Of a DNA stretch of 64,000 bases, positions 1 to 58,989 are shown in pieces; within the stretch, counting starts at the first letter, position 1; every line of letters starts with the position of its first letter. A program made the translations under genes and the position numbers. Source of the stretch: Hyphochytrium catenoides (taxonomy: Eukaryota > Protista > Hyphochytriomycota); NCBI GenBank assembly GCA_900088475.1, contig FLMG01002723.1:62001-126000 (forward strand), written 5' to 3'. The notes below the pieces were generated by a model. The model ran no database searches. It was not told where the DNA came from and saw only the letters and a list, made by a program, of their open reading frames with translations.

Positions 1-3000
1 TTCCTATGAAGCAACCATTATGTCTCTGACAACTCTCAACATCTGATATTCGGCCGTGAGGGTTGTACCTGTTCCGCTTTCTTGTGAGCAGCTCTTCGTG
101 CTTCATCCTTCCTTTTGTCCTCTTCTATTATAAGTTGGTACTCTTGAGGACTTGTCTGGCGCAAGTTTTCAAGCTTGAGAGCTCGTTCCTACATCAAAGA
201 AGAATGAGACATTAGGCAAGAGCTTTATGCGATACTAAGGCTGCAAAGTAAGAGCTCTGCCAAGTAAAGACGGGTCGTTCCCAGAATAAAAACGGTTAGA
301 TGTACCTGCTCCAATTGCTCCTTTATGGACTGGTTAAAAGCTAAACTGACTTCTTCCTCCTTTCGCATCTGCAGCAGGGCAGTCATCTACGAGGAAGCAG
401 AGATTAATTAGAATCTTATGCTTCTGCTTGCTACCGCACCCTACCGTCGTCTACGAGTTGAGCCGCAGTCTCTGTTGAAAATACCATCATCCGATGCTGC
501 TTCTTACCTCGTCTTGGCGCTGATCATCCAAAAAGGCAGCATACTTGAGAAGCACAGCTTGCAAGAGTACATGTCTCACAATACTAAGGAAGGTACCCTC
601 CTCAACAGGTTCTCCAGGTCTGAGGAGTTCACCAAGTGGGTACACCGAGAGCTGCTCCCGGTAGCATAAGTTGGTAACAAACTCGTCATCCAAAACGCTC
701 ATTATCTTGCAAGTAGAAAGAGAAGTTAGAGGCTGCGGAAGGTGGCGCTTAACGTAGCAATAGCGGAAGGACTTTGGTTCCGCTAGACAGACCTAAGATT
801 AACAATTTCTATTCGTCTATTAGGCAGTTTTAGTCTGGACGGGCACGTAGAGGTGGAGAAAGAAATCACCTTTGTGAGAGACTGCGGAAGTTTGCGATAT
901 ACGTGCTTTATCGCTTGCTCCACCTGCGGGTGCAAAGTGTCCTCGGCTGACAGGTCAAGCGTGCGGATCTCGGGCGGGCGAGTAGTGTCTTGGATGTGGT
1001 AGTCCGCGTAAGCGAGGCGAATAATCTCTTCCACCTCCATGCTCTTAAATGATGCCTGGAATGACTGATAGAATAAGGATTCTGGAGCTGAGAGTAAGAG
1101 TTCATCCTGCCATCTTTGGATGCAAGTCGCCCGGAAGCAGATGGAGAATTGAAGTTAGATATGTTTACCACCTTCTTCCTTCGTCCCTTCTGCCGATCTG
1201 CTTGTCTCTCTTCTTTGCGCCATATCTAGTATCGTCGACCTAAACCGACTCTACTGGGGAAACCCAATGATCTCCAACAACAAGGCAGCCAATCAAGCGT
1301 ACCTTAGCGCTCCTTGTCTAGGAGCAAAAGATGCTAGCCATGAGGGCGGCGAGCTTGTATGGCCAAGAGGATGAGCGGTGCTTTGATTGTCAAAGGTAAC
1401 ATGGGTTGCCTCCAGAACAGGCTGTTGGAGAGCCTGGAATGACGACGGAATTGGTTCAGATAGCTTAGGCATCCTTGCAGTGAGCAGCACATAGTTCCGA
1501 CTGTGAAAAAAGGTGTGCTTGAATAGATACACGTCAATAGCACCATCAGTCGGCAATGTCTGGGTGTCAAGGACGTAGTCTGCGACGCGTGAGACAATGG
1601 AGTGGGGCGGAGTCATGCGCCAGACGCAGGGGAAATGCGCAAGGCGGTAGGGTGTTAGATGTACAGCCAGAGTTCTAGATGGCAGGGAGAATTCACCTGA
1701 CAATGGCCCGGAGACAAGCTGCCTGCCCTGGAGGATGCTCAGTGCACTGCTGATGGAGGTGCTGGCTGCTATTCCCAGCCCTCCCGATAACAATACGAAG
1801 TCGCGGCCCTCACCCTATTACAGTGAGTATTGACCTCGGTTATTTGCTAGCTGTGGACTCCCAATTGCCTCTTCTGGTCTGTTACCTTTGCCTTCCACTC
1901 AAATAGGGTCGAAATAACTTTGAGCAGTTGCTTGGGAGAACGCGACCATCTAAGGAGCTGAGGATTGGTCTGGGAGATAAAGTTTACAGAAGTGTGGGAT
2001 GGACATGCTTCAGGTGGATGGCCAACGTGACCGCGGTGACTAGTAATGGTGAGTAGAACAGGAATATTGCTTTTCGAAAGCAGCCAAGAGCATAAAAGCT
2101 GGTCATTAAAAGTCGGTAATGACGAATTGAAATGACAAAGACCCAAGGTTCAAATACGCTGTTGTCCTGACTCCAGCCCTGCGGAGCCAGATACAAGTTC
2201 TAAGTGTTTGATCTGACCTGCGTGATATTGCGTATCTCTTCATCTTGCGACAGTCCAGAGCTCTCATCTCCTTTGCTTTCTGAGAATAGCAGAAGTGGTG
2301 TCTCGGTCACCAATACCAGAAGTTTAACAGAGGGATCGGCTAATAGGCGAGTAAGTTCGTCCCAGGTTTTATCTGAGATCACTGGCGGCTGAGTGTAAAC
2401 AGACGGTGGCGACGAGAGGAAAGGACTGTCATTAGTCGGCCCCGATCGCAAGTCGACAGGAAAGCAAGGGAGACAAGCAGGATAAGATAGGCACCGAGTA
2501 CGATCTTGACCCACCTCATCGTAAGGCGTTTCTGACTCTCTTTCAGCCCAAGTCGCTTCCTTCATCGCAGGCGCCACGCATCGTTGGTCTATGAAAAAGT
2601 AACAGAGGCCACCCAGTCGCACCATGCCATCTTGCGGACCCTCTAAGGAAAAAGATGCAGGTAAATGACTGCAAAGGGCATCGGAGGGTAATGCAGATTG
2701 AACTACTGGCCAGAAGCTAAGGGAGGAGTAGGAGAGAGTCAACGGAAGCCGAGCCTTGGCAGAGAGAGAGTGTGTGCTAGGGGAGGAAAACGGTACGAAC
2801 AGCAGCGAGCTAACCATGGCTTAATGACTCGGCCGAGGCAAAAAGATGCCTCTGATATTGCAGTTGCGTCTGCTTGACAATCTCTACCATCATATCTAGA
2901 GCATCGTCCAGCCCTTTGTGCTCCATCCTCATTCTTTCAACGAGATCCAACGGGTAATCCTGGCCGCTTCTCAGCATGATATTGGGGCAACGCGATAGCA

Positions 3001-6000
3001 CCTGTAGTACAATTCAATGGAAGTAGGTGGCTTGAGCAAGAGGTGGGTAGCTTGTGAAGTCGTTAAGCAAAGAGAGAATAAATTGAAGAAGAGAGAAAGT
3101 GGAAGACGGGTTACAATGGATCCTTGCCTTCCTGGTGGCGGGTGCATTCCATGCTGCCCTGTACGCCTCCCTGACTTTGTCTGTCATGATGGCTCGAAGA
3201 TACTTCCTCGCCCGAGGGTCTCCTGCTTTGAGCTCATGCTGGAGCCATAGTGCACCTTCCACGAATAGCTCGCGGAGCTGAACCTGAAGCAAGAAACAGG
3301 TTTATCGTCCCCCCATCATACGACGTGGTTTGAAGTCTAACGTTTCCGGCCCAGTTCCTTCTTTGAAGTGACCCTGCATGTAAAGAGCTAACCTGCATGT
3401 CTTAATCCCTCGCATACCGCTCACTTCTAAACGATATTGTACTGTTTGCCATCCCCTACCTATACGGCCCTCACTTACCTGGCCTCCCAAGTGCAAAATG
3501 GCTGAAATATTGTTCCACGGAACTTCTAGCTGTTTCTCCAACTCATGCCAAAGCACCTTGTCATCAGGACCCAGAGCAGCTGGACTGTTACCGCTCACCG
3601 CAATCAGGCTGGACAATTCTGGGTTAAAGGCAGGAGTGCTAAAACATCCCCGCCTACTCTCCCCGTTGTCCACCTGAAATGGAAGTTTGATGATTGACAG
3701 TGGAGAACATGCGGGTTAGGACTGGCCTGGAGTTGCGTAAAGCCAGAGGAGCTTGAAGGTGACAGGCACGATACAGGAAGAAAATAAGGACCATCAATAG
3801 CACCACTCAGCTTGACATCACTGGCAAGGTATTTAAAGCTCCAATAGATTCACTCACTCCTTCGTAATCTATGAAGTAGCGTCGTGCTGGTCTCAGTCTG
3901 CTGAAGGCAAAAATTTGCGGCGAGTTCTTCTTCATCTCTCTCCTCTCTCTGAACTCCTCCCTCGAAAGCGAATCCGTTAAGATCATCGTCACGTTCTCAG
4001 GAGTAGAAACCTCAAGCAGAATAAGGACTGTAGCCGCCTGGCGGAGGTCTATGGGGTCCACGTGAACCGTCAACCTCCCAATCACAGGTCCGACGGTAAT
4101 TCGACATTCGCGGCTAGACATGGGCAGAAGAAGGCCGATGGTCATGAACAAGAAGAAACTTAGTGCGGCATGGAACTTTCTAAGCAATGTGGGAAGTAAT
4201 GGCGGCTAAGTTAGTTCTATCAGAGAAGGCGTTGTGGAATGGTGTTGGTAGTTGGAGCTAGGGAAGAGGCCATTCACGAGCGACAAAGAAGGTGAGTTAG
4301 GAAGGCGCAACGACTTGGTCCGTGTAAAGAGGCTTCATACCTCTCCCTGTCATAGTCCTTGAAATACAACTCTGCGTCCGCGGCCGACGGATCTGCGCTG
4401 ACGTGAATGAAGGCCAGACTGTGGCCTCTCTTTGACGGAAAGGGTTTGTGACTATAGTGAAATAGTCCCAGTATGTTGCCCTCAAGCGAAGGCAGAAAGA
4501 GGGATGGACAGTCCGTGACGGGGCTTAGGATCACCTGGCGTATTGTAGTGCTCTGGCGGGAAGAGCGTATCTGGGTGGCAATGCCTGCGTGACTAGGAAC
4601 CTGAAACCGACCGCCACCAACACAGAAAAAGAGAACTGTCAAAACGTAGCAATGAGCTTGCTAGAAGTAGTGGAAATGACCAGAATGGGGAGAGAAATGG
4701 ACCCTAGACGACTGGAACCTGATAAAGGAGAATGGATACACGTTCCATAGCCCTCTCATAGCATGCTTACCAGCCTCGCACTCCTAGCCCGTGCGTCCGT
4801 TGGGCCTCTGAGGTTACTCCTTTCGCCACAGATGATGATTGCGTCCCTGCCACTTTTCTCAAGCTTCCAGCTGCAAATTTGCTCTAGCACTTCAACCAGC
4901 TCACTTTCCTTGAAGCTCCAGAGGTCCTCATAGTCGTCTGGGGAACATGGTGGTATCCTTTCTTCCCCTCCAACGCTTCCAGCCTCTCCTCCTATGACTC
5001 CCGCCTTGTTTTTCTTCCGCGCAGCCTTAAGCTCACGAGCAGATGCCCAGACAAGCGGAAGCTCCGAGACAATGATCAGACACAAAATCTGCGGCAGGGA
5101 AAGGGCATATGCCAAAGAAAAGGGATCTGAGGCATTAAGCAAGGAGCCGCCCTGCTTTCATGACGCCATAGGGATGTAAAGGATCAGGTGGAGGAAGTAT
5201 GGTAAAGTTAGTGTGGGTAAGTGATGGTAGACGAGTGCAGAATGGGATAGTACTTGGCGCGGCCACGTCTGAAACGCATAAACCCACCGTTAACGTGCCG
5301 TCTGCTCGCTGTCTGTGGGCTTTGGTGTCCATCATCAAGATCGCAACCTGACCAAACTTAACAGAAGGAGATCGGATGGTTCTATGAAAACTCTAGCAAA
5401 ATCAAAAGTAAATTTGGAATGAAAAGATTGATAACCAGAACTTAGGTCAGGGACAGCTCGACAAGAGGTCGAGCCCCAATTAGGGATTATTTGCTTATAA
5501 CGGGGAAATCCGACGGGAAAGGTAGGTTGGATGAGGCCATACCAGTATGACATTTTGATGACTGGAGTTCACAGGTATCTCCACCTTATCAGGGTTCCCT
5601 CCGCCCAAAATATCCTCGCTGTACTCATAAAGCTGCTCCTGATACTGAAACCACGCCTTGCGACCAAGCGAAAGGGAAGTCTCTGGGTCTAAGGGTGGAC
5701 ATTAACAGGTGCCACAAGGAGAAGCACCGATAGGTCAAGCCTCTTACCCAGTTGCAGTCCTTGTGTGATACTCTCCATGCCTTGGTTGATATCATTCAGG
5801 CTCCAAAGAGGGAGATGGGAGCAGGAGTTTAGCAGCTGCTGCAAGCCTGGCCAGTTCCACGTCCGTCGGTACTGATCTCGTAACCTCTCTAAAGCCTCCC
5901 GCGAGTTGAATGATGAGCTTTTGATATAGTCTGGAAGGGTTGATATGGGTTGCTTTCCTACGGCGCAAAGTTCGAGAGTTAAGTTCGTAAGTGCCAACGT

Positions 6001-9000
6001 GTCAGAGACCAATTGTTCCGCCTCTTGTGTTTCTTCCTGCGCGGTCGCCCCATCCGAAGAGACTTTCTCTATGTTGAACCCTGCTCGTGCCGATGTTGAC
6101 AACATGGACGCATAGTGTCTCCTCAAATGGTTTAGGTTTCAGTATCTTTTCTACATTAATATGAGAATTCCTGCTCCTCAAGCGGATAATAGAGATAGAC
6201 GCGTGCGCACCTCTGTTCTTTACAAGGGAGAGATGGTTCTTCATCAATCTTGCCGAACGGCGACCCACTTGACTACCAGCATGCACCAGGACATCAAAGG
6301 GTTGTCGTATGGCCGAACGTGAGGCGTGAATATCCGTCCAGAGGTTTGCAGTGGGAAGGTCCGCAGCCGTGAAGACTTGCAATGGGGAGAATGTAACGCT
6401 TGATCTTTTCATCTGGCCCAATAGTGATGACCGCCTGGCTCGAATGCCTGAACGGAAGCAATGGGGAGCCCGTAAGGAAGGTGGTGGGCGAGACTCCACG
6501 TGGAGCAATAGAGGAAGCGAAGATACGATACACAGATGATTTTGCTGATAGAGAGATCTCAAAAGCGAAGAGCAAGTTTTTAATGGTGTGAACTGCGGGA
6601 AGCTCTTGTAGATATATAAGATTACACTGGCGAAATATATGGCCCTGAAGAGATAATATATGAAAGAACTTTAAGGTAGCAGGGATAAAAGGTCATTTCA
6701 CTTACTTTGAGGATCACTGCCTTCATCTTGCCTATATGCCTCATCAAGCTGCACAAGTGGTCTCACGAACCCAGCGGGGATAGAAGGAGACGATAAGGAA
6801 TCCCAGAACTCCTTTTCTTCTTCTGGAGCGAGCGCTAACGGATCATTGCCATAGACGAACCCAAGGCGAATGCTGGAGAGGACTCTAGGGAAAGTTTGGA
6901 CTACTCCTGGTGGCGTCGGAGGATTTAATACACCCTGAGATAGCGAAATAAAATGAGCCTCAGAGGTAGTAACAAAGCAAGTGCCATCTGACACCAAAAA
7001 AATGAGTAACCAAAGCTATGATCTGATGGAGCCGTAAAACCTCCTTACGGGGTAAGAGTAAATTGAAACAATGGCATACAAGCAGTTTAGACATGAAGCG
7101 GTGCAATATGGTGCCTGCAAGTATAGGCCCGGCTCTACAAAGGGATATCTTCAGAGCCCTGATGCTATAAACTGACCTCAACATGAAGTAGATATCTCGT
7201 GTTCGGGCTGAGGTCACGAAACTGGAAAGCCCTAGGCTCATAAGGTAGCATGTCTACCGTGACCCCGTGCCTGTACAAGGGATCGGCGAGCATGCCCGAG
7301 GTTTAGCGTGATAATAGCGAGGAGGTAGGTCAAACAAAGCAATTACGATTTTGAACGCAGAGTGCGAGTAAAGGTTGCCAAGTAAAAAAGCCTCATCAGA
7401 AACCAGAAGTGTGTACGACGGGTTGCCTCTTAAGACTAGACGGTATGCATCGGATTGTCTCTCGGTACCGTTGCTGTTTTTGCTCATTGCTCAGTATGCA
7501 GGTAACACGGGATCGACTGTCCACTTCCACCAAGACTCGAGCTGTGGAAGAGGTTATTTGACCAACCACTGGACCAACCTAATGATAGAAGGCCCAAGCA
7601 AGAAGTGAGGACAGACATCCACCTCATCAAGGAAGAGCACCAGTGACAGATACTAACACTATAGAGAAGAAAAAGGTTCATATCCAAGCGATATTAGCTG
7701 TCTAATAGATTTCTAGCACGTTGCTACTAGCCTCACACAAGCATACCGTAATCTGGGCGTACGCTTGTTGAGGATAGAAGATCCCGGATACTTTGGCTTG
7801 GAGGGGATGGTCGAGGACCTTAAGATCCAACAAACCGTATGGCGCTACAGTGTATCGTGGGATAGAGAAATGAGAGTGGAGGTAATGAGGCACGAGAAGT
7901 CTGACAAAGGTGAAAAGCGAGATAGACGATGGAAAGCGTGTAGCAGCGTATATAGAGCTCTAAATTTCACACAACAACAGACACGGCTAAACTGTACCGG
8001 CCGACGGAAGTGAGTTGGAAAGGGTTCCGTCTTCGACTCTGCATATGAATGGTCCCAAATGGAACTCTGTGGCAGAGCTTGTCTTTGCTGGATCTGAATC
8101 TTTTGCAGACCTTGCGCTAGCGCTATCTTCCCTTGTCATCCAAGAGGAAGATACTTGAAACTCAGTTAGCAGTGGCTCTTCTCTCTGGAAATGTGAGACT
8201 CTGATCGACACGTTCTTGCCTACCCCTGCTAGTGCGGAACTGACGATGGCGATATCTCTTCTCGAGTCCTTAAGTCGAGATTCAGTGATTAGAAAAGGTG
8301 AATAACAGCTGTGCCCCTTTGTCCCCCATCCCTGAGTGTCTCGCGTATGTATATATCCTCCTTTCCCTTAGGGTATCTGCCTCTTCTGTCTGACCTAGTA
8401 TTTCACTTACCATTGCTTTCCATACCATCAGAAGTTCAAGAAGCTCCACCAGCGTCTTTCCGTGGCTCCACCATTCGCTTTCGGCGTCAGAAGAGAGTGG
8501 AAGAAGAGGGAAAGAGCTGATGAGGAGGATGGTACTCTTCGCTCCTTCGTGCTGAAGGATAGTCTGGAGAGCCCTGAGATGGGAGACAGATAGGGCTTGC
8601 CCCTCTGATGTGCCATTGATATAGGCATCTTCGCTGGTATCCAACAACAAAACAAGGCAGGTTCCGAAAGCCTTTTTCTGTACCCCCAACTTGCCTAGAG
8701 AATCTTGAGAAAACGCTGGTGAAGAGATAGAACAAGGGGGAGTATAGTAGATATCAGAGCCAGTTGTCACCAAGAGCTGGTGCTGATATTCGTGCACGGC
8801 ATCCCAGATGATTCTCCTCAAGCTGGGGTGATAGAGCTGTCGTTTTGAGTGAATGCCTAATTCAGGGGGCATTGGCAAGATTAGTCAGGATGCGGAATGC
8901 ACAAAAGTAAGAAGTTTTTTGTTCGAACAAGGACCACGCCAGGCTGTGGACATGGCGGAGGATGGTACGACATAGACCACAAGGATAAAAGCAACACCTA

Positions 9001-12000
9001 CCTCCTAGATCAGGGAGGCTAACTACTAGAAAATTTGAAGCGTGAGAGAGGACCTCGCTTCTGCCGGGAACCGTCCACAATCGGCGGTAAGCTTCTTTCA
9101 CCCTCTTTTTTACTCTCTCTGCTGCTTGGCTCATTATTTTAAAGAGAGCGTTCCTTACCCCCTCACCACCTTCGCCTTTGTTACTTTCAACTCCATCATC
9201 ACTCTTAGCATATCGGTCAGGGCCGCTCCACATGTCGAGTAGCGGAGGGTCCACCGCCTCGTCCAGCGCAAAGGCTAGCGTCTGTCTTAACTCACAAAAG
9301 AGGGAGGACAACTCATCCTCTAAGCATATCTGGCCGGAGTTAAAAGTAGATTAGGTCGTAGAAGTGGGTCGTGGGAGATTAACCTTCATTATCGCAGAGC
9401 TGCGATGACGGAGCATCTATCATGTGGGAGATCTTAATGGCACCCAGCAGGACTGTACGATGGCTCACCTGTCCTGCCAAATGTACAATAAAGTGAAATG
9501 GCGGCCTAGGGGACATCTGTGCGGAGCTGAGTCCGTCCCATACAGGGCAATCGGGATTACTGCCTCCCGCAAGGGTCAAGAAGGAGAGGGACAAAGGATG
9601 CTGTGGCAGTGTCCTCAAGCATCCTACGTGTGATACTCCAGATGCAACCCCCTATATTGAGCTTGGCTGAGACTTAGGTAAAGGTAGACACTTTCGAAGG
9701 AAGATTGTGAATGCTGGCCTAGGCCAATAGAATGCGGACATACAGCAACCGAGAATATCACCTTTAACGAGGTTCTGCCTCCTACCTGGAAGTATACCAG
9801 GTAGCTCCGCTCAGGCTCGAGGCCTGTAACTGTCAGAACCTTAGGGACGTTAGCCTCCATTCTCTGTTTCTTCTTCATCCTGCGCAATCATTTTAGACAG
9901 TCAACGCTTCAAACACATCTCATTTTGCATAGCAGTGCTATCTTTGCGATGCATCGTCTCTCTCGCCGCTCTAAGGTGAGACCTTGTTTCACAGTCTTAA
10001 TTACCTCCTACATACGATTATATGATTCCTTTCACAGTCAGCACTATTTGTACTTACGTGTTGAGGCTGACTTGCTCTACCAGTAGGCAGTCGATGGTAC
10101 AGTCTTGGTCGACCTCAAGTAAGATGCAAGCGAAGGTGCTATTCACCTCTCCGATAACAGGCCCCAACTTCAAAGGACAAGAAGGAGGTTAACCAAACTT
10201 AAAGCCAAGCGTGATGCAAACGGCTGAGTCCGTGATGAAGCAATGCCGTTCGTACCACAATATTTGGCATTGGAAACGCCAGAGCCCGAACATACTCGCG
10301 TTGCTGGGACGATATGTAGTCACCTGCGCAGTCAATCACCACGTAGGGACACCAACCCTTGAACTCGTCCGTACCGTCTATTAGAGAGAGAGGGAACTCG
10401 ATGAGGACGGTCAAGCCCGGTCGCAGTCTCAGCAGGAAGATGTAGGAACATTAAGGACAGCAATTGATCAAGAGATACAGGCCAAGACCACGAAAGAGTG
10501 AAGAGTAATCTCAACCATCCTGCTTCTCGACACATTTCACATGCGCTTTGTGATACGCTGTATACTGCTTTCCAAGGGTTGAGGTCGCGGTAGTGACCTG
10601 ACCCCCTAAAGGATTGATACTTGTATCGCTCGAGGTTGTCGGAAGGGTAATGTTCCAGGAAGTTAGGGAAATCTGTGTCAGGACAATTTTCTCCCTGACA
10701 TCCCCAGCATCTTCAAAAGCAGAAGAACAGACGGCCGTCTCAACTGGACAGTGTATGCACGGTGAGAAAGCTAGTACATGCCTGTCTTCATGTCTGTCTT
10801 CTCCCTGAGTGAAGATTGCATTAGTATCGACAAGCAGATATGTATAAAACTCACTAGTCGTTGACTTCCTACAGATGAGCACACTTTGAGTTCTCTCTAA
10901 CAGCTTGGTACTCTCACAGATCTAAGGGGTCGGATGGCGGTAAGCCGAGATCAACCTGGTCAAAAAAACCCTGGACAGCATTCATTATTCCTTGTAGGGT
11001 CTGTAGGCGGCTCCCCTCTTCTTCATTATACCCAACAGGAACCAGAGGGTCACAATTTGAGAAAATCAGAACTTGGAGGGGACCGTTAATCTCCTCATTC
11101 AGGCACTTCATGATGCCTTCGGACACCTGGAAAGGCACAAGTGACAGATCCCATGAGCCCAGGCTATTTTGCCTAGAAGAAAAACACAACTGTAGACTGT
11201 GAACATGAGGCTCATAACGCAGAGGGCAACAGCAGACGGTATCTAGCGCGTCTGGTTTGGCCTACCGAACGGAATGCGCCTGCGGAAGTCGTACAGCGCG
11301 AAATTATAAGGACCGCGTCCCCAAGCTGCAGAATGTCAGCGGACGTATTGCTGCCCTCTTTCTGTCGCTCCTCGCTTTCCCAGTCACTGTGTGCCCCGGT
11401 TGCTCCCCCACTCCTTCCAGCGCCACCTTCGGGTGGACCAAAGTATTGGTCCTGCAGCTCCTTGAAAGATCTCTCGAGTTTGTCAACGGCTCCGGGAAAA
11501 CGAGAGAAAACTGTCTCCCTGAGCTCTGGAGGAAGGTCTACCCATAGATCAGCTAGGAGGGTAAGCTTAGCCAGAGGTACTCTGCGATATCCCTGTAAAT
11601 ATTGTCTCTATAACAGGTTTGTACTTGCGTACCTCGCCCTTCCAACCCTTTCCCCGGTGCCATATCCTACACTTCGACCTCAGCCCCTTACCTTTGTTGT
11701 AGACAAAATAGCTCGCTTTGCTAGCAAGAGTCCAGCGTACTAGCGGTAATGAGAGAGCCTTTAAGAAAAAATCTCTGAGGCCTCCTCTCACCGCATTGAG
11801 TCCCTACGAGGAGGACGTGAGCGTTCAATACGACAGGCAGAAGGTAGCAACAGAGAGTCTTGAAGAAGCTGTAAGGGTCGCTGTACCTGATTCTCATTGT
11901 CAGCGATGAGTATACGAAGGAGCTCTAAAACTGTTTCCTTTGGAGGGATGAGTGGGCGGAGGTGAACTATCGCTTTATATTCCATCATCTTGGTTTGTTC

Positions 12001-14325
12001 TTGTCGTAATGGACTTAGAATGGGAGAGAAATGAAATTGAGAGGTAAGAGAACGAAGTTTCTTTACACTTTTATGCATCCACGATGAGTGAGATTGAAGA
12101 AGGACAGCTTGCGTACCTCTGACCGATAAGGTTTGGGCTCAAAGCACTTGTTAAGACTAGTAGAGGGTATGAATGCTCCTCTTCTCCTTGCTCTTTATCT
12201 TGGGGCTGTCCTTCACTTTCGGCCTCTCGCTTTGGCACTTTCCCATCCTTGTGAAATTTCCGCAGTTGTCGAGGCATTGGAGGAGTATGGAGGATGCAGC
12301 TGGGGCATCTACTATCCCTGCCGTTCACTTTGTAGAACTGAACGATATATGTGCTCTCTGGGAGGAGACCATCAAAGATGAAAGATGATGGCAACCCCCC
12401 TCGTATCTCCTGTCGTTGCACAGCATAGTTGCCACCGGTGGGACACGTTCTTTTGATGGAGCAGACAACTGCGGGTGAATAGGGCCGACAGGGAAGACAA
12501 GCCAGGAAGACGAAAAGGTGAGGGCGGGACCATTAGCAAACCACGCAAAGAGAACACAAGAGATGAACGAATGGTGGGAAGCCACAAAATGCTGCCAAAC
12601 GATGTCTCTAGGTTAAACCCGGGATTAGACACACTAACCTTCCGCTGACTGGCTAATCTCTATTAGAACTCTCGCCTTCGAGGAGGTAACCTATTTGGAA
12701 AATGGTCATCCTTCTCTTGGCCAGCTGGGAGCGGCGCTGATCAAAGCAGCTTGAATACAGGAGAAAAAGGAGAACTGGAAAGTAATAAGAGAAACGGAGT
12801 TCGGTGAAGTAAAGCGTTAAAAAAAGAGAGCAAGTACTCTATGACTAAGGGAACGGGAGACAGTCACGTAAGTTTGGGGCACAAAGGGAGATTGAACAAA
12901 GGCTACCTCATGAACTATAGGTCCCGCCACCATAAACGGAAAGGAGAGCTCCGAGAAGGAGGAAGTGAGTCTCCGATGGTTCTGATCATCTGCCATGGAT
13001 GTGAGAAGTGCTTGTAATCTCCCCAACAGCTGATCTACAGCTATATAAAGTCGAGGAAAGAGGTCCAGGTAGCGTGAGAAGCCTCTCACTAGGTCGTTAT
13101 CCCTCGCCCACTGTTGGAGTTCCTCTATGTTGATGGCATCTCTGAGTAAATGAGGAGGAAGAACAGGCGGAAATAGGATGTTTGAGAAAGCCATAAGTTC
13201 AGAATTGAAGATCAGAATTGAAGACCAGAAGCAAGGAGGGAGAGGTGACCAGGGAACAACTGCTTCACAAGGATTAAACCGCTTCACAGATGAGAACGTT
13301 GACGACTGCAGGGTTGTAGAACATAGATCAGGGTTGGGACAGAGACCTTAGTAGGCATGGATGCCAGTCCTACCTCTTCATAATACTAGCTTCCATAAAA
13401 GCGGAGGCGCTGACTAAAGATGCCACATCCCCCATTTTGAGACCTTCCCCGGGATAAAGTCCGAGGCGCTGCAGCCCCGAAAGGACAGAGCGAACTAACA
13501 TCGACAGCTCGTCTTCTGAGATCTCGTCTGCCCGGTCAAAGTCGAACATTTTGAACAGGACGTTCAGTTTGTCCACAATGCTCCCTCTTCCTAGAATGAT
13601 CCAAACACTGAAGAGCTACGAAACGGAGGAAGCAGCAACGTCAGAGAACCCAGCCCCCGAGTAGTCTCTAAGACCAAGCCTAAAACTCTTTGAGTGGATG
13701 GGGCGCAGCCATTGAGATAACACGATCCAGAAGAGAGCCCATGCCAAAACTGCAACAAGTAAGGAACTGCCAACCGTCAGTGAAGAAAGACGTGATGCCA
13801 TGGCTGAGACGATAAGGCGGTTCACTTTCATTGAAAGAGTAGCCTTCAGAAACACTGCGTTACCTCGAGAAGGTCCACCACCCCATCTTCCGCGCCTTCA
13901 AAAAGCTCGAACACTTCTCGCAGGGTGATGTGTTCGTCGAAGCTCTCTTCCTCCTCACCGTACTTCCTAATCTTTAGCAATATACTTCGGTCGACGGTCC
14001 GCTCTCCGTGGAGCTCTGGGGCTGAAGGTGGACGTGAAAGATAAGCCTCAAAATGAGGAGCAGGTAGCTCTTCACCCTCTGCTTCCTCCTTCTGCTTGGG
14101 TAGGGATCTAGTAAGGAATTTCCTCCTGCCCACTAGTTTGACCAGCTCCTCGTAGTCCAAGGAGTAGACACTTGGGTCATCGTCTGCTCTCTGTGCGAAG
14201 TGCATCCGAAACAAGTCATTGACATCTTGTACATCCCACTTGCTGGCCGCCTCAGCAAAGTTGAGTAAGTACAGCAGGCGCATCCTGCTGAGCTCCGAGG
14301 GTATCTTCATCCCTCTTCTACTCAT
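1..14325 (-). CDS. Giant multi-exon protein: EF-hand (calcineurin-B/NCS-like) N-terminus, 4 tandem degenerate PhoD-like modules (FN3-like + metallophosphatase fold), coiled-coil C-terminus; 3' end outside window
   Basis: Continuous chain of minus-strand exons. EF-hand: DKLNVLFKMFDFDRADEISEDEL (13370-13576). Module starts: GPIVHEV (~12920), GPVIGEVNSTFACILLEV (~10160), VGPVVGQITSSTARVLVEV (~7575), VGPVIGRLT..VLILLEV (~4090). Each is followed by an F/VxxLxPxxxY FN3 strand (LLPESTY, LEPERSY, LSPNTRY, LRPARRY) and an HL/AxxQV motif (clear in three, degenerate VHLRPL in the first). Last visible exon 69-188 (ERALKLENLRQ...HKKAEQ) ends at a GT donor. Start codon is approximate. Confidence 0.75.
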
Positions 14326-57349: not shown

Positions 57350-58027
57350 CTAGGCCGAAGAGGCTGCCTCGGTAGCCTTTAGCTTCTCGCTAAACAGCTT
57401 CTTAAACTTGTTCACCTTAGGATTGATGACAAACGTGCAGTACGAGTTTTGATCGCCTACGCGATTGAAATAGTTGTGGTGATAGTCTTCCGCCTCGTAG
57501 AACTCTGTCAGGGGGACAATCTCTGTCACCACTGGGTCGGTGTAAAGTTTTGCCTCCTCGACTGCCTCCTTCGAGCGAAGAGCGATCTGCTGCTGTTCTT
57601 CATCGTGATAGAAGATTACGGACCGATACTGAGTGCCCACGTCGTTGCCCTGACGGTTCAGGGTGGTCGGATCATGGGTCCTCCAGAAGACCTCGAGGAG
57701 GTCGGCGTATGACACTTTCGATGGGTTAAAAGTGATCTGGCAGACTTCAGCATGGCCGGTATCGCCGGCACATACCTCCTTATAGGTTGGGTTTGGCCGC
57801 TTCCCTCCTGCATATCCTGGGACGCAACGCTCCACGCCGTCCATTCGGCCGTATATGGCTTCCACGCACCAGAAGCATCCAGCCCCAAGCGTTGCTTTCT
57901 GCATGATGAGCTGATGATGAAGAGTTGAGAGCCGCCTAAGAGGTACGCTTGAGAAGCTCCTGATGCGGAGATTGTGGGGTGGCTGGCGAGGGAAGTGGCG
58001 AACCAAAGATGGCAACTGGCGCCTCAT
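57350..58027 (-). CDS. msrA: Peptide methionine sulfoxide reductase A, intronless, with Arg/Ser-rich transit peptide
   Basis: GAGCFWCVE, PTYKEVC..TGHAE, HDPTTLNRQGNDVGTQYRS, FYEAEDYH. Confidence 0.96.
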   Translation of the reverse strand: MRRQLPSLVRHFPRQPPHNLRIRSFSSVPLRRLSTLHHQLIMQKATLGAGCFWCVEAIYGRMDGVERCVPGYAGGKRPNPTYKEVCAGDTGHAEVCQITFNPSKVSYADLLEVFWRTHDPTTLNRQGNDVGTQYRSVIFYHDEEQQQIALRSKEAVEEAKLYTDPVVTEIVPLTEFYEAEDYHHNYFNRVGDQNSYCTFVINPKVNKFKKLFSEKLKATEAASSA

Positions 58028-58948: not shown

Positions 58949-58989
58949 NNNNNNNNNNNNNNNNNNNNNNNNNNNNNNNNNNNNNNNNN
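58949..58989. other. Assembly gap (N run)
   Basis: 41 N characters. Confidence 0.99.

Follow-up and report, generated by a model that had tools for sequence, protein, structure and literature searches.

Organization of the locus

Hyphochytrium catenoides is a protist whose group is related to the oomycetes. On the minus strand of the window, i.e., the whole 64,000-nt stretch of contig FLMG01002723.1 that was analysed, a gene spanning about 13 kb is predicted. It would encode an N-terminal head (residues 1-240) followed by four homologous modules (M1 to M4; Table 1). Exons were joined by dynamic programming and then curated by hand, whereby the first exon of M3 and a GC donor in M4 were added and two false micro-exons were removed. 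The resulting model is predicted from sequence and stop-free by construction. A first automatic model, which over-split the gene with 125 introns, was dropped. In the curated model 36 of the 37 introns are of the GT-AG type and one is GC-AG, with a median length of 145 bases. The GC-AG intron was modelled because a GC donor alone connects both homologous M4 exons in frame. The least certain splice regions are the middle of M1 (about 11900-10600) and parts of M3. As the first in-frame stop is met three codons past M4, the predicted protein would comprise about 2,490 residues, and not the more than 3,000 assumed in an earlier note on this DNA. Coiled-coil exons are located below 1250, and the gene may alternatively continue into them.

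Table 1. Coordinates of predicted features in the window (positions of the forward strand).
Feature	Position	Strand	Remarks
Whole gene model	1293..14325	-	38 coding exons, ~2,490 codons; ATG 14325, stop 1293-1295
First coding exon	13864..14325	-	154 residues, helical, without signal peptide; open frame from ATG
EF-hand-like exon (NCS / calcineurin-B / CHP type)	13374..13615	-	weak PDB and Pfam matches
Module 1 (M1)	10256..12945	-	most diverged; begins within an exon that also carries the head linker
M1-M2 intron, in frame	10168..10255	-	GT-AG, 88 bases
Module 2 (M2)	7747..10167	-	seven exons; cleanest model
M2-M3 intron, in frame	7579..7746	-	GT-AG, 168 bases
Module 3 (M3)	4341..7578	-	ten exons; long insertions
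M3-M4 intron, in frame	4114..4340	-	GT-AG, 227 bases; alternative acceptor at 4179
Module 4 (M4)	1303..4113	-	nine exons; then three codons and stop
GC-AG intron in M4	3002..3127	-	homologous exons flank both sides
C180 (Fe ligand) equivalents	M2 9565..9567, M3 6848-6850, M4 3590-3592	-	column map
GDYIY-motif equivalent (D207, Y210) in M2	9469..9483	-	hand reading of spliced sequence
GDYIY-motif equivalents, other modules	M1 11944-11964, M3 6263-6283, M4 3479-3493	-	hhalign column map
D265/D266 equivalents (WDDHE) in M2	9015..9020	-	hhalign column map
D265/D266 equivalents, other modules	M1 11693-11698, M3 5797-5802, M4 2963-2968	-	hhalign column map

The earlier note had recognized four collinear modules on this strand, and they were recovered at roughly the positions given there. 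Their ends had to be corrected, each module being 150-300 bases longer than first noted. In the spliced model the four homologous modules are 513-578 residues long, and no additional copy was found elsewhere in the 64,000-nt window. In pairwise phmmer comparisons of the spliced modules (database size 1), M2, M3 and M4 matched each other with E values of 1e-17 to 1e-19, and M1 matched M2 with 2.5e-5 via its front beta-sandwich part. M1 is also, as had been claimed, the most diverged module, given its P of 1.6e-4 against the M2-M4 profile. Identity among the modules amounts to 21-34% over the aligned parts. The sizes of the first two exons (110 and 94 bases) are common to M2 and M3, and intron positions are shared between M2 and M3 (three), M2 and M4 (two) and M3 and M4 (two). 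Motif strings quoted previously are real except for the final V of the M2 motif-I string, which is the GT of an intron donor; after splicing, the residue that follows Q is L.

Module junctions

The M1-M2 and M2-M3 junctions lend sequence support to a single giant gene, as previously proposed, while the M3-M4 junction would also permit a separate M4. Neither M2 nor M3 has a start of its own: an in-frame stop lies seven codons upstream of the first M2 exon without an ATG, and another lies directly upstream of the first M3 exon, again with no ATG. Moreover, GT-AG introns of ordinary length and correct phase are present at all three junctions, and one exon holds both the head linker and the start of M1. 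From these data we infer one transcript for all parts. Division into two or more genes, with the EF-hand-like head or M4, for example, forming a transcript of its own, is considered unlikely, albeit three features would fit it: (i) an in-frame ATG stands upstream of the first M4 exon, so that a separate M4 gene can be envisaged; (ii) reading of M3 past its last donor would meet a stop after 22 codons; (iii) the head is connected to M1 by predicted introns only.

N-terminal head

The first coding exon gave no match in Pfam or in PDB sequences (phmmer), and AlphaFold prediction of this exon alone reached a pLDDT of 39.7. No relatives of the N-terminal ORF were detected in metagenome scans and a word search. 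The EF-hand-like exon matched mostly EF-hand proteins when compared with PDB by phmmer, among them the NOX5 EF domain, p22/CHP, GCAP1, NCS-1 and calcineurin B, all of these matches being weak (E 0.016 to 1). Pfam EF-hand_6 matched the same exon with an E value of 0.0036, which is under the family cut-off. As read from this exon, the loop carries Ala at position 5 and a residue other than the canonical Gly at position 6.

A hydropathy scan of the predicted protein revealed no hydrophobic N-terminus, no export signal (Tat or Sec), no membrane anchor and no convincing membrane segment. Kyte-Doolittle windows above 1.6 were confined to predicted core strands or to one uncertain exon. A cytosolic location of the protein is therefore what its sequence suggests.

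Similarity of the modules to PhoD

A reference profile was constructed from 90 bacterial PhoD sequences, of which L054 was checked as an example and scored 1.6e-125 against Pfam. Joined modules were compared by local alignment and hhalign, and single exons or ORFs served as queries for Pfam, PDB, Atlas, large protein searches and AlphaFold. The four-module profile aligned with the PhoD profile with a score of 48.1 and a local P of 2.8e-5 (hhalign). The highest score among 48 column-shuffled controls was 21.1, and the reversed control gave a P of 0.72. M2 alone matched the PhoD profile with a P of 2.6e-4. The assignment of the modules to the PhoD type by the earlier note holds at the profile level for the front half, which aligned on its own with a probability of 92% and a P of 5.1e-7. 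For the back half it is weakly supported: aligned on its own, this half was not significant (P 0.27, at best 0.021), and in the global alignment it was placed collinear with PhoD.

When the module HMM was run on 519 length-matched ORFs, PhoD accounted for 24 of the 30 top ranks (hypergeometric P 1e-13). The other six comprised no PhoD or metallophosphatase family; five were members of other real families and one was Pfam-negative. Atlas features assigned 26 of 30 matches of an M2 back-half exon (8411-8854) to Metallophos; for exon 9003-9290 they were noise, recognition being under the useful level.

None of Pfam PhoD, PhoD_N and PhoD_2 was detected in 28 single-exon translations at E values up to 0.1-1, and matches of the bacterial PhoD HMM to all minus-strand ORFs were insignificant and loosely collinear. 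A core exon found no match in PDB (phmmer), nor did ORF 8285-8878 among 1.84 billion representative proteins (phmmer). AlphaFold models of two single exons had pLDDT values of 35.9 and 39.7.

Several non-ligand residues conserved in PhoD are retained here, namely two Gly where the N-domain begins, L.P..Y, G..T.P, the motif-I His, Arg in YR, Asp in LDT and one Trp. Descent of the modules from PhoD is thus supported by sequence comparison for the front half.

Metal-ligand positions

In PhoD, Fe and Ca are held by C180 (or Asp), D207, Y210, D265, D266, N271, N272 and D436 (PMC4223295). The Bacillus enzyme is inactive after a single substitution of C180 or D265, and drastically less active after one of D207 or D266 (PMC4223295). 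These positions were located in the modules with the hhalign column map, in which the motif His of the modules aligns with PhoD H204. D207 and Y210 of M2 were read by hand because the map has a gap in M2 at H204.

Mapping on the spliced exons gave non-ligand residues at C180, D207, Y210, D265 and D266 in M2 to M4. C180 is replaced by Gly in all three modules, the M1 column being unreliable. At D207/Y210, G/R is found in M2, S/G in M3, G/Q in M4 and P/P in M1. The D265 position is occupied by S in M2, M3 and M4 and by N in M1, and the D266 position by L in M2 and M3, G in M4 and K in M1. For N271/N272 the alignment is ambiguous. At the D436 place the aligned modules have Ala or Gly, and M3, for which the map shows a gap, may have Glu; this assignment and that of H438 are tentative because the back half is not significant against PhoD. 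Ligand loss in every copy, as postulated before, can hence be upheld for the front half of M2 to M4, with M1 being less securely aligned, and loss of the GDxH site would hinge on the alignment of the back half, which by itself lacks significance. With these qualifications, the designation "dead PhoD modules" is supported by the sequences.

Could the modules nevertheless be enzymes that act on an unknown substrate, by hydrolysis or by transfer, through a different, lineage-specific set of residues? Candidates would be the Ser and Asp that M2 to M4 retain in place of WDDHE. Both columns, D265 and +3, are identical (Ser, Asp) in M2, M3 and M4, a conservation that exceeds what would be expected of a free loop at 21-34% identity. 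However, five ligand sites are occupied by Gly, Ser, Leu, Pro or similar residues, no compensating His/Asp/Asn pattern is common to the modules, and in Bacillus PhoD one ligand substitution suffices for the effects described above. We therefore regard retained catalysis as improbable and favour modules without enzymatic activity.

Proposed role

In the proposed model, a cytosolic protein would have an EF-hand-like N-terminal region, similar in type to neuronal calcium sensors or calcineurin B, followed by four tandem PhoD-derived modules. Each module would derive from a complete PhoD unit, consisting of a PhoD_N-like beta-sandwich and a metallophosphatase core, and the four may have arisen by old duplications of a unit already bearing introns. 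Fe/Ca ligand sites would have been replaced by Gly, Ser, Leu or similar residues and fold-defining residues retained. Because the ligand positions are replaced, the trimetal centre should be unable to form, and the modules should be unable to act as PhoD phosphatases. Since metal-holding residues needed by the enzyme appear to be lost in every copy, the most likely reading of the protein is a non-enzymatic scaffold with an apparently undescribed design. On such a non-catalytic platform, partner proteins or a ligand bearing phosphate may dock to the dead active-site faces or to other surfaces, and binding might be controlled by calcium via the head.

On balance, we consider it probable that a single gene encodes an EF-hand-like head together with four ligand-less PhoD-derived modules and that its product would serve as a non-catalytic platform. 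More speculative, and in our opinion rather doubtful, is the extension that this gene defines a lineage-specific family of cytosolic, Ca-sensor-coupled multi-PhoD pseudoenzymes, the pockets of which would read a phosphate-bearing ligand within a multivalent, Ca-gated platform. Polyphosphate, phospholipid head groups or phosphoproteins may be the ligands in that case.

Comparison with known systems

Work on PhoD has dealt with an extracellular enzyme by which bacteria, algae and parasites scavenge phosphate. Each module shows the same order of parts as bacterial PhoD (Bacillus subtilis PhoD, PDB 2YEQ; PF16655 and PF09423), namely the N-terminal beta-sandwich, core lead-in segment, motif I His, Tyr-Arg helix, the WDDHE place and, tentatively, the LDT and GDxH places, and several PhoD-conserved non-ligand residues are kept. 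In contrast to bacterial PhoD, the metal ligands are replaced, four units are present per chain, an EF-hand-like head precedes them, an export signal is lacking, and exon by exon the modules remain under the Pfam thresholds. PhoD enzymes of eukaryotes, such as PtPhos5-7 of Phaeodactylum and those of Babesia and other apicomplexans, have a single domain together with a signal peptide, a membrane anchor and conserved metal ligands (PMC10907312). They resemble the modules in representing PhoD descent in a eukaryote, stramenopiles included, whereas the gene described here is tandem and ligand-less, with no anchor seen.

Vps29 of retromer and the B subunits of DNA polymerases alpha, delta and epsilon possess a metallophosphatase fold with no working metal site and serve as protein-binding platforms. 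They are single-domain proteins from other clan branches, are conserved throughout eukaryotes and do not derive from PhoD, yet they provide a working mechanistic analogy for the predicted scaffold. A second likeness, again by analogy only, exists to calcineurin, in which an EF-hand protein of the calcineurin-B/NCS type is paired with a partner of metallophosphatase fold. Calcineurin A, however, is an active PPP-family enzyme whose EF-hand part is a separate chain, unlike in the present gene.

To our knowledge, all descriptions of the PhoD fold in eukaryotes so far concern secreted or membrane-bound enzymes. If the scaffold model is true, this fold, like those of Vps29 and the polymerase B subunits, would have been recruited to non-catalytic work, here as a multivalent tandem into which calcium may feed. 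Under the more speculative family reading, the modules would constitute a new class of pseudo-phosphatases on this fold. The protein would add a further case to the pseudoenzyme catalogue, and its binding and localisation could be studied directly.

Purple acid phosphatases share the fold class and the beta-sandwich type of N-domain with PhoD and, when active, possess a tyrosinate-Fe site (PMC4223295). Origin of the modules from such a branch of metallophosphatases with an N-terminal beta-sandwich, rather than from PhoD proper, would accord with the weak Pur_ac_phosph_N match given by a true PhoD and with Atlas matches to the general Metallophos family. The profile of the modules was compared with that of PhoD, and purple acid phosphatases, whose motif set differs from that of the modules, were set apart by description only. 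The significant alignment, however, spans parts specific to PhoD, i.e., the G..T.P segment following the N-domain, the His-containing motif I and the Tyr-Arg helix that precedes WDDHE, which makes such an origin very unlikely and PhoD the preferred ancestor. Least probable is that the locus consists of PhoD pseudogenes decaying in an array, with the open exon chain an artefact of a stop-avoiding model: although the model was built stop-free and the orthologue search gave none, the blocks homologous among the four modules are contained in long open exons (up to 446 bases) bordered by consensus splice sites at positions partly common to the modules, and copies at 21-34% identity would without selection neither have remained open nor have retained the PhoD fold residues.

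With regard to annotation, the modules are overlooked by domain models, and looser matching would mislabel them as phosphatases.

Four tandem modules in one predicted gene

Between 14325 and about 1290 on the minus strand of the window, which is eukaryotic, many short open frames are separated by stop-rich spacers. A dynamic-programming splice model, revised manually using the sequence itself and the resemblance of the modules to one another, comprises 38 coding exons. Of its 37 introns (median length 145 bases), 36 are GT-AG and one is GC-AG. After splicing, four modules (M1 to M4) of 513-578 residues could be aligned end to end, which bears out the four modules described in an earlier note. 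The predicted product, from the ATG to the first in-frame stop, comprises about 2,490 residues and is thus smaller than the size of more than 3000 residues proposed there.

Predicted features of the PhoD-repeat gene and other features of the window
Feature	Position	Strand	Remark
Start codon ATG	14325	-	predicted gene start
Module M1	12945-10256	-	
Module M2	10167-7747	-	
Module M3	7578-4341	-	
Module M4	4113-1303	-	
GC-AG intron	3127-3002	-	sole non-GT donor among 37 modelled introns
First in-frame stop	1293-1295	-	three codons past last module
Methionine sulfoxide reductase A (MsrA) gene, intronless	57353-58027	-	PF01625, E 7e-65
Assembly gap	58949-58989		run of 41 N

Pairwise E-values among M2, M3 and M4 ranged from 1e-17 to 1e-19; the aligned BLAST segments, the longest of about 450 residues, were 21-34% identical. 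M1 matched M2 at 2.5e-5, chiefly in the front part of M1, and the M2-M4 profile with a P of 1.6e-4. The opening exons of M2 and M3 are equal in size (110 and 94 bases) and phase. Intron positions are shared between M2 and M3 (three), M2 and M4 (two) and M3 and M4 (two), and hence the duplicated unit already carried introns. Judged from sequence, the module duplications are old. A module HMM detected no extra copies in the remaining 50 kb of the window.

M1 and the linker that connects it to the N-terminal region share an exon, in which M1 begins. An in-frame stop lies immediately ahead of the first exon of M3, and one lies seven codons upstream of that of M2; as neither exon has an ATG, both require upstream exons. 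The introns at the three module junctions are 88, 168 and 227 bases long; all are GT-AG and keep the frame. M4 has an in-frame ATG upstream and may be expressed as a separate transcript. A single large protein, as predicted from the splice model, is likely.

Downstream of the stop at 1293, more open exons with good splice sites were seen (1-1250, minus strand); they include charged, coiled-coil-like segments that extend past the start of the window. These exons represent either the next same-strand gene or the 3' continuation of the PhoD-repeat gene via a donor at 1302. A 136-residue low-complexity ORF (11333-11743, plus strand), probably not a genuine gene, runs antisense to the middle of M1, where the exons of the sense strand are modelled with least certainty.

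Relationship of the modules to PhoD

With regard to PhoD, single exons gave no match to the Pfam PhoD models, nothing in a PDB sequence search and no significant match to a bacterial PhoD HMM. Structure models of two single exons (pLDDT 35.9 and 39.7) were too low in confidence for use. As a PhoD reference set, 90 full-length ORFs were taken from bacterial genomes scanned for a WDDHE-coding pattern; one of them, L054 from Bacillus stercoris, matches PF09423 at 1.6e-125 and retains the numbering of Bacillus subtilis PhoD.

In profile-profile comparison, the four-module alignment matched PhoD with a local P of 3.9e-4; trimming the PhoD alignment to the L054 columns improved this to a P of 2.8e-5 (score 48.1). 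The reversed control gave a P of 0.72, and the maximum score of 48 column-shuffled controls was 21.1. The front half alone (N-domain through the WDDHE place) matched with a probability of 92% (P 5.1e-7), whereas the back half alone was not significant (P 0.27; 0.021 at best, using another alignment). PhoD accounted for 24 of the top 30 hits of the module HMM among 519 length-matched ORFs drawn from the same bacterial loci (P 1e-13). None of the other six showed a PhoD or metallophosphatase family: five matched other real families and one had no Pfam match. For the back-half exon 8411-8854, language-model features placed Metallophos in 26 of the 30 nearest clusters (score 0.92), an assignment that is a lead, not proof.

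The modules retain the following near-invariant non-ligand columns of PhoD: (i) the two initial Gly of the N-domain; (ii) L.P..Y; (iii) G..T.P; (iv) the His of motif I; (v) the Arg of the Tyr-Arg helix; (vi) the Asp of LDT; (vii) one Trp.

Metal ligand positions

In B. subtilis PhoD, activity is abolished by the substitutions C180A, D265A, N271A, N272A and D436A and nearly abolished by D207A and D266A, and Fe is ligated by the Tyr of GDYIY (PMC4223295). The C180 position is Gly in M2-M4. At D207, Gly, Ser and Gly are found in M2, M3 and M4, and at Y210 Arg, Gly and Gln, with Pro at both positions in M1; the M2 residues come from a manual reading of the spliced sequence, as the column map has a gap there. 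D265 is replaced by Ser in M2-M4 and Asn in M1, and D266 by Leu, Leu and Gly in M2, M3 and M4 and Lys in M1. Common to M2-M4 at the old WDDHE site is a Ser followed by an Asp three residues on. In the weak back-half alignment, the D436/H438 places read Ala/Ala in M2 and Gly/Gly in M4; M3, gapped in the map and read by hand, perhaps has Glu.

The proposed loss of ligands in every copy is supported for the front-half positions in M2-M4 and, with a less secure alignment, in M1; at the GDxH place it depends on a weak alignment. The motif strings reported earlier were correct save for the last V in M2, which stems from an intron donor GT. For the front half of the modules, descent from PhoD with loss of the metal ligands is well supported; for the remainder it is plausible.

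N-terminal region and relatives

The predicted protein showed neither a signal peptide nor a convincing membrane segment. The first exon (13864-14325) had no matches in Pfam or the PDB sequence search. Exon 13615-13374 matched mostly EF-hand proteins in the PDB (NOX5 EF domain, p22/CHP, GCAP1, NCS-1, calcineurin B), with weak E-values from 0.016, and its Pfam EF-hand matches were sub-threshold.

No relatives were detected for ORF 8285-8878 (phmmer, 1.84 billion representative proteins), in two metagenome scans or in a word search with the N-terminal ORF; as searches were made exon by exon and the word search was length-filtered, long orthologues may be missed. The eukaryotic PhoDs known so far have a single domain and are anchored enzymes that retain their ligands (PMC10907312). 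Literature searches found no pseudo-phosphatase of the PhoD type. As proposed in the earlier note, the four-module protein may be a scaffold or phospho-ligand sensor.

Other features of the window

For eight long ORFs (214-511 residues) within 20235-47705, Pfam gave no family at E 0.01; these may represent lineage-specific genes or exon-intron read-through. The MsrA gene was 84% and 76% identical to sequences on two Logan contigs. The next best matches (about 65%) were mostly unnamed metagenome proteins; the named ones belonged largely to Bacteroidota, with some in neighbouring phyla. This protist gene may be of bacterial origin.
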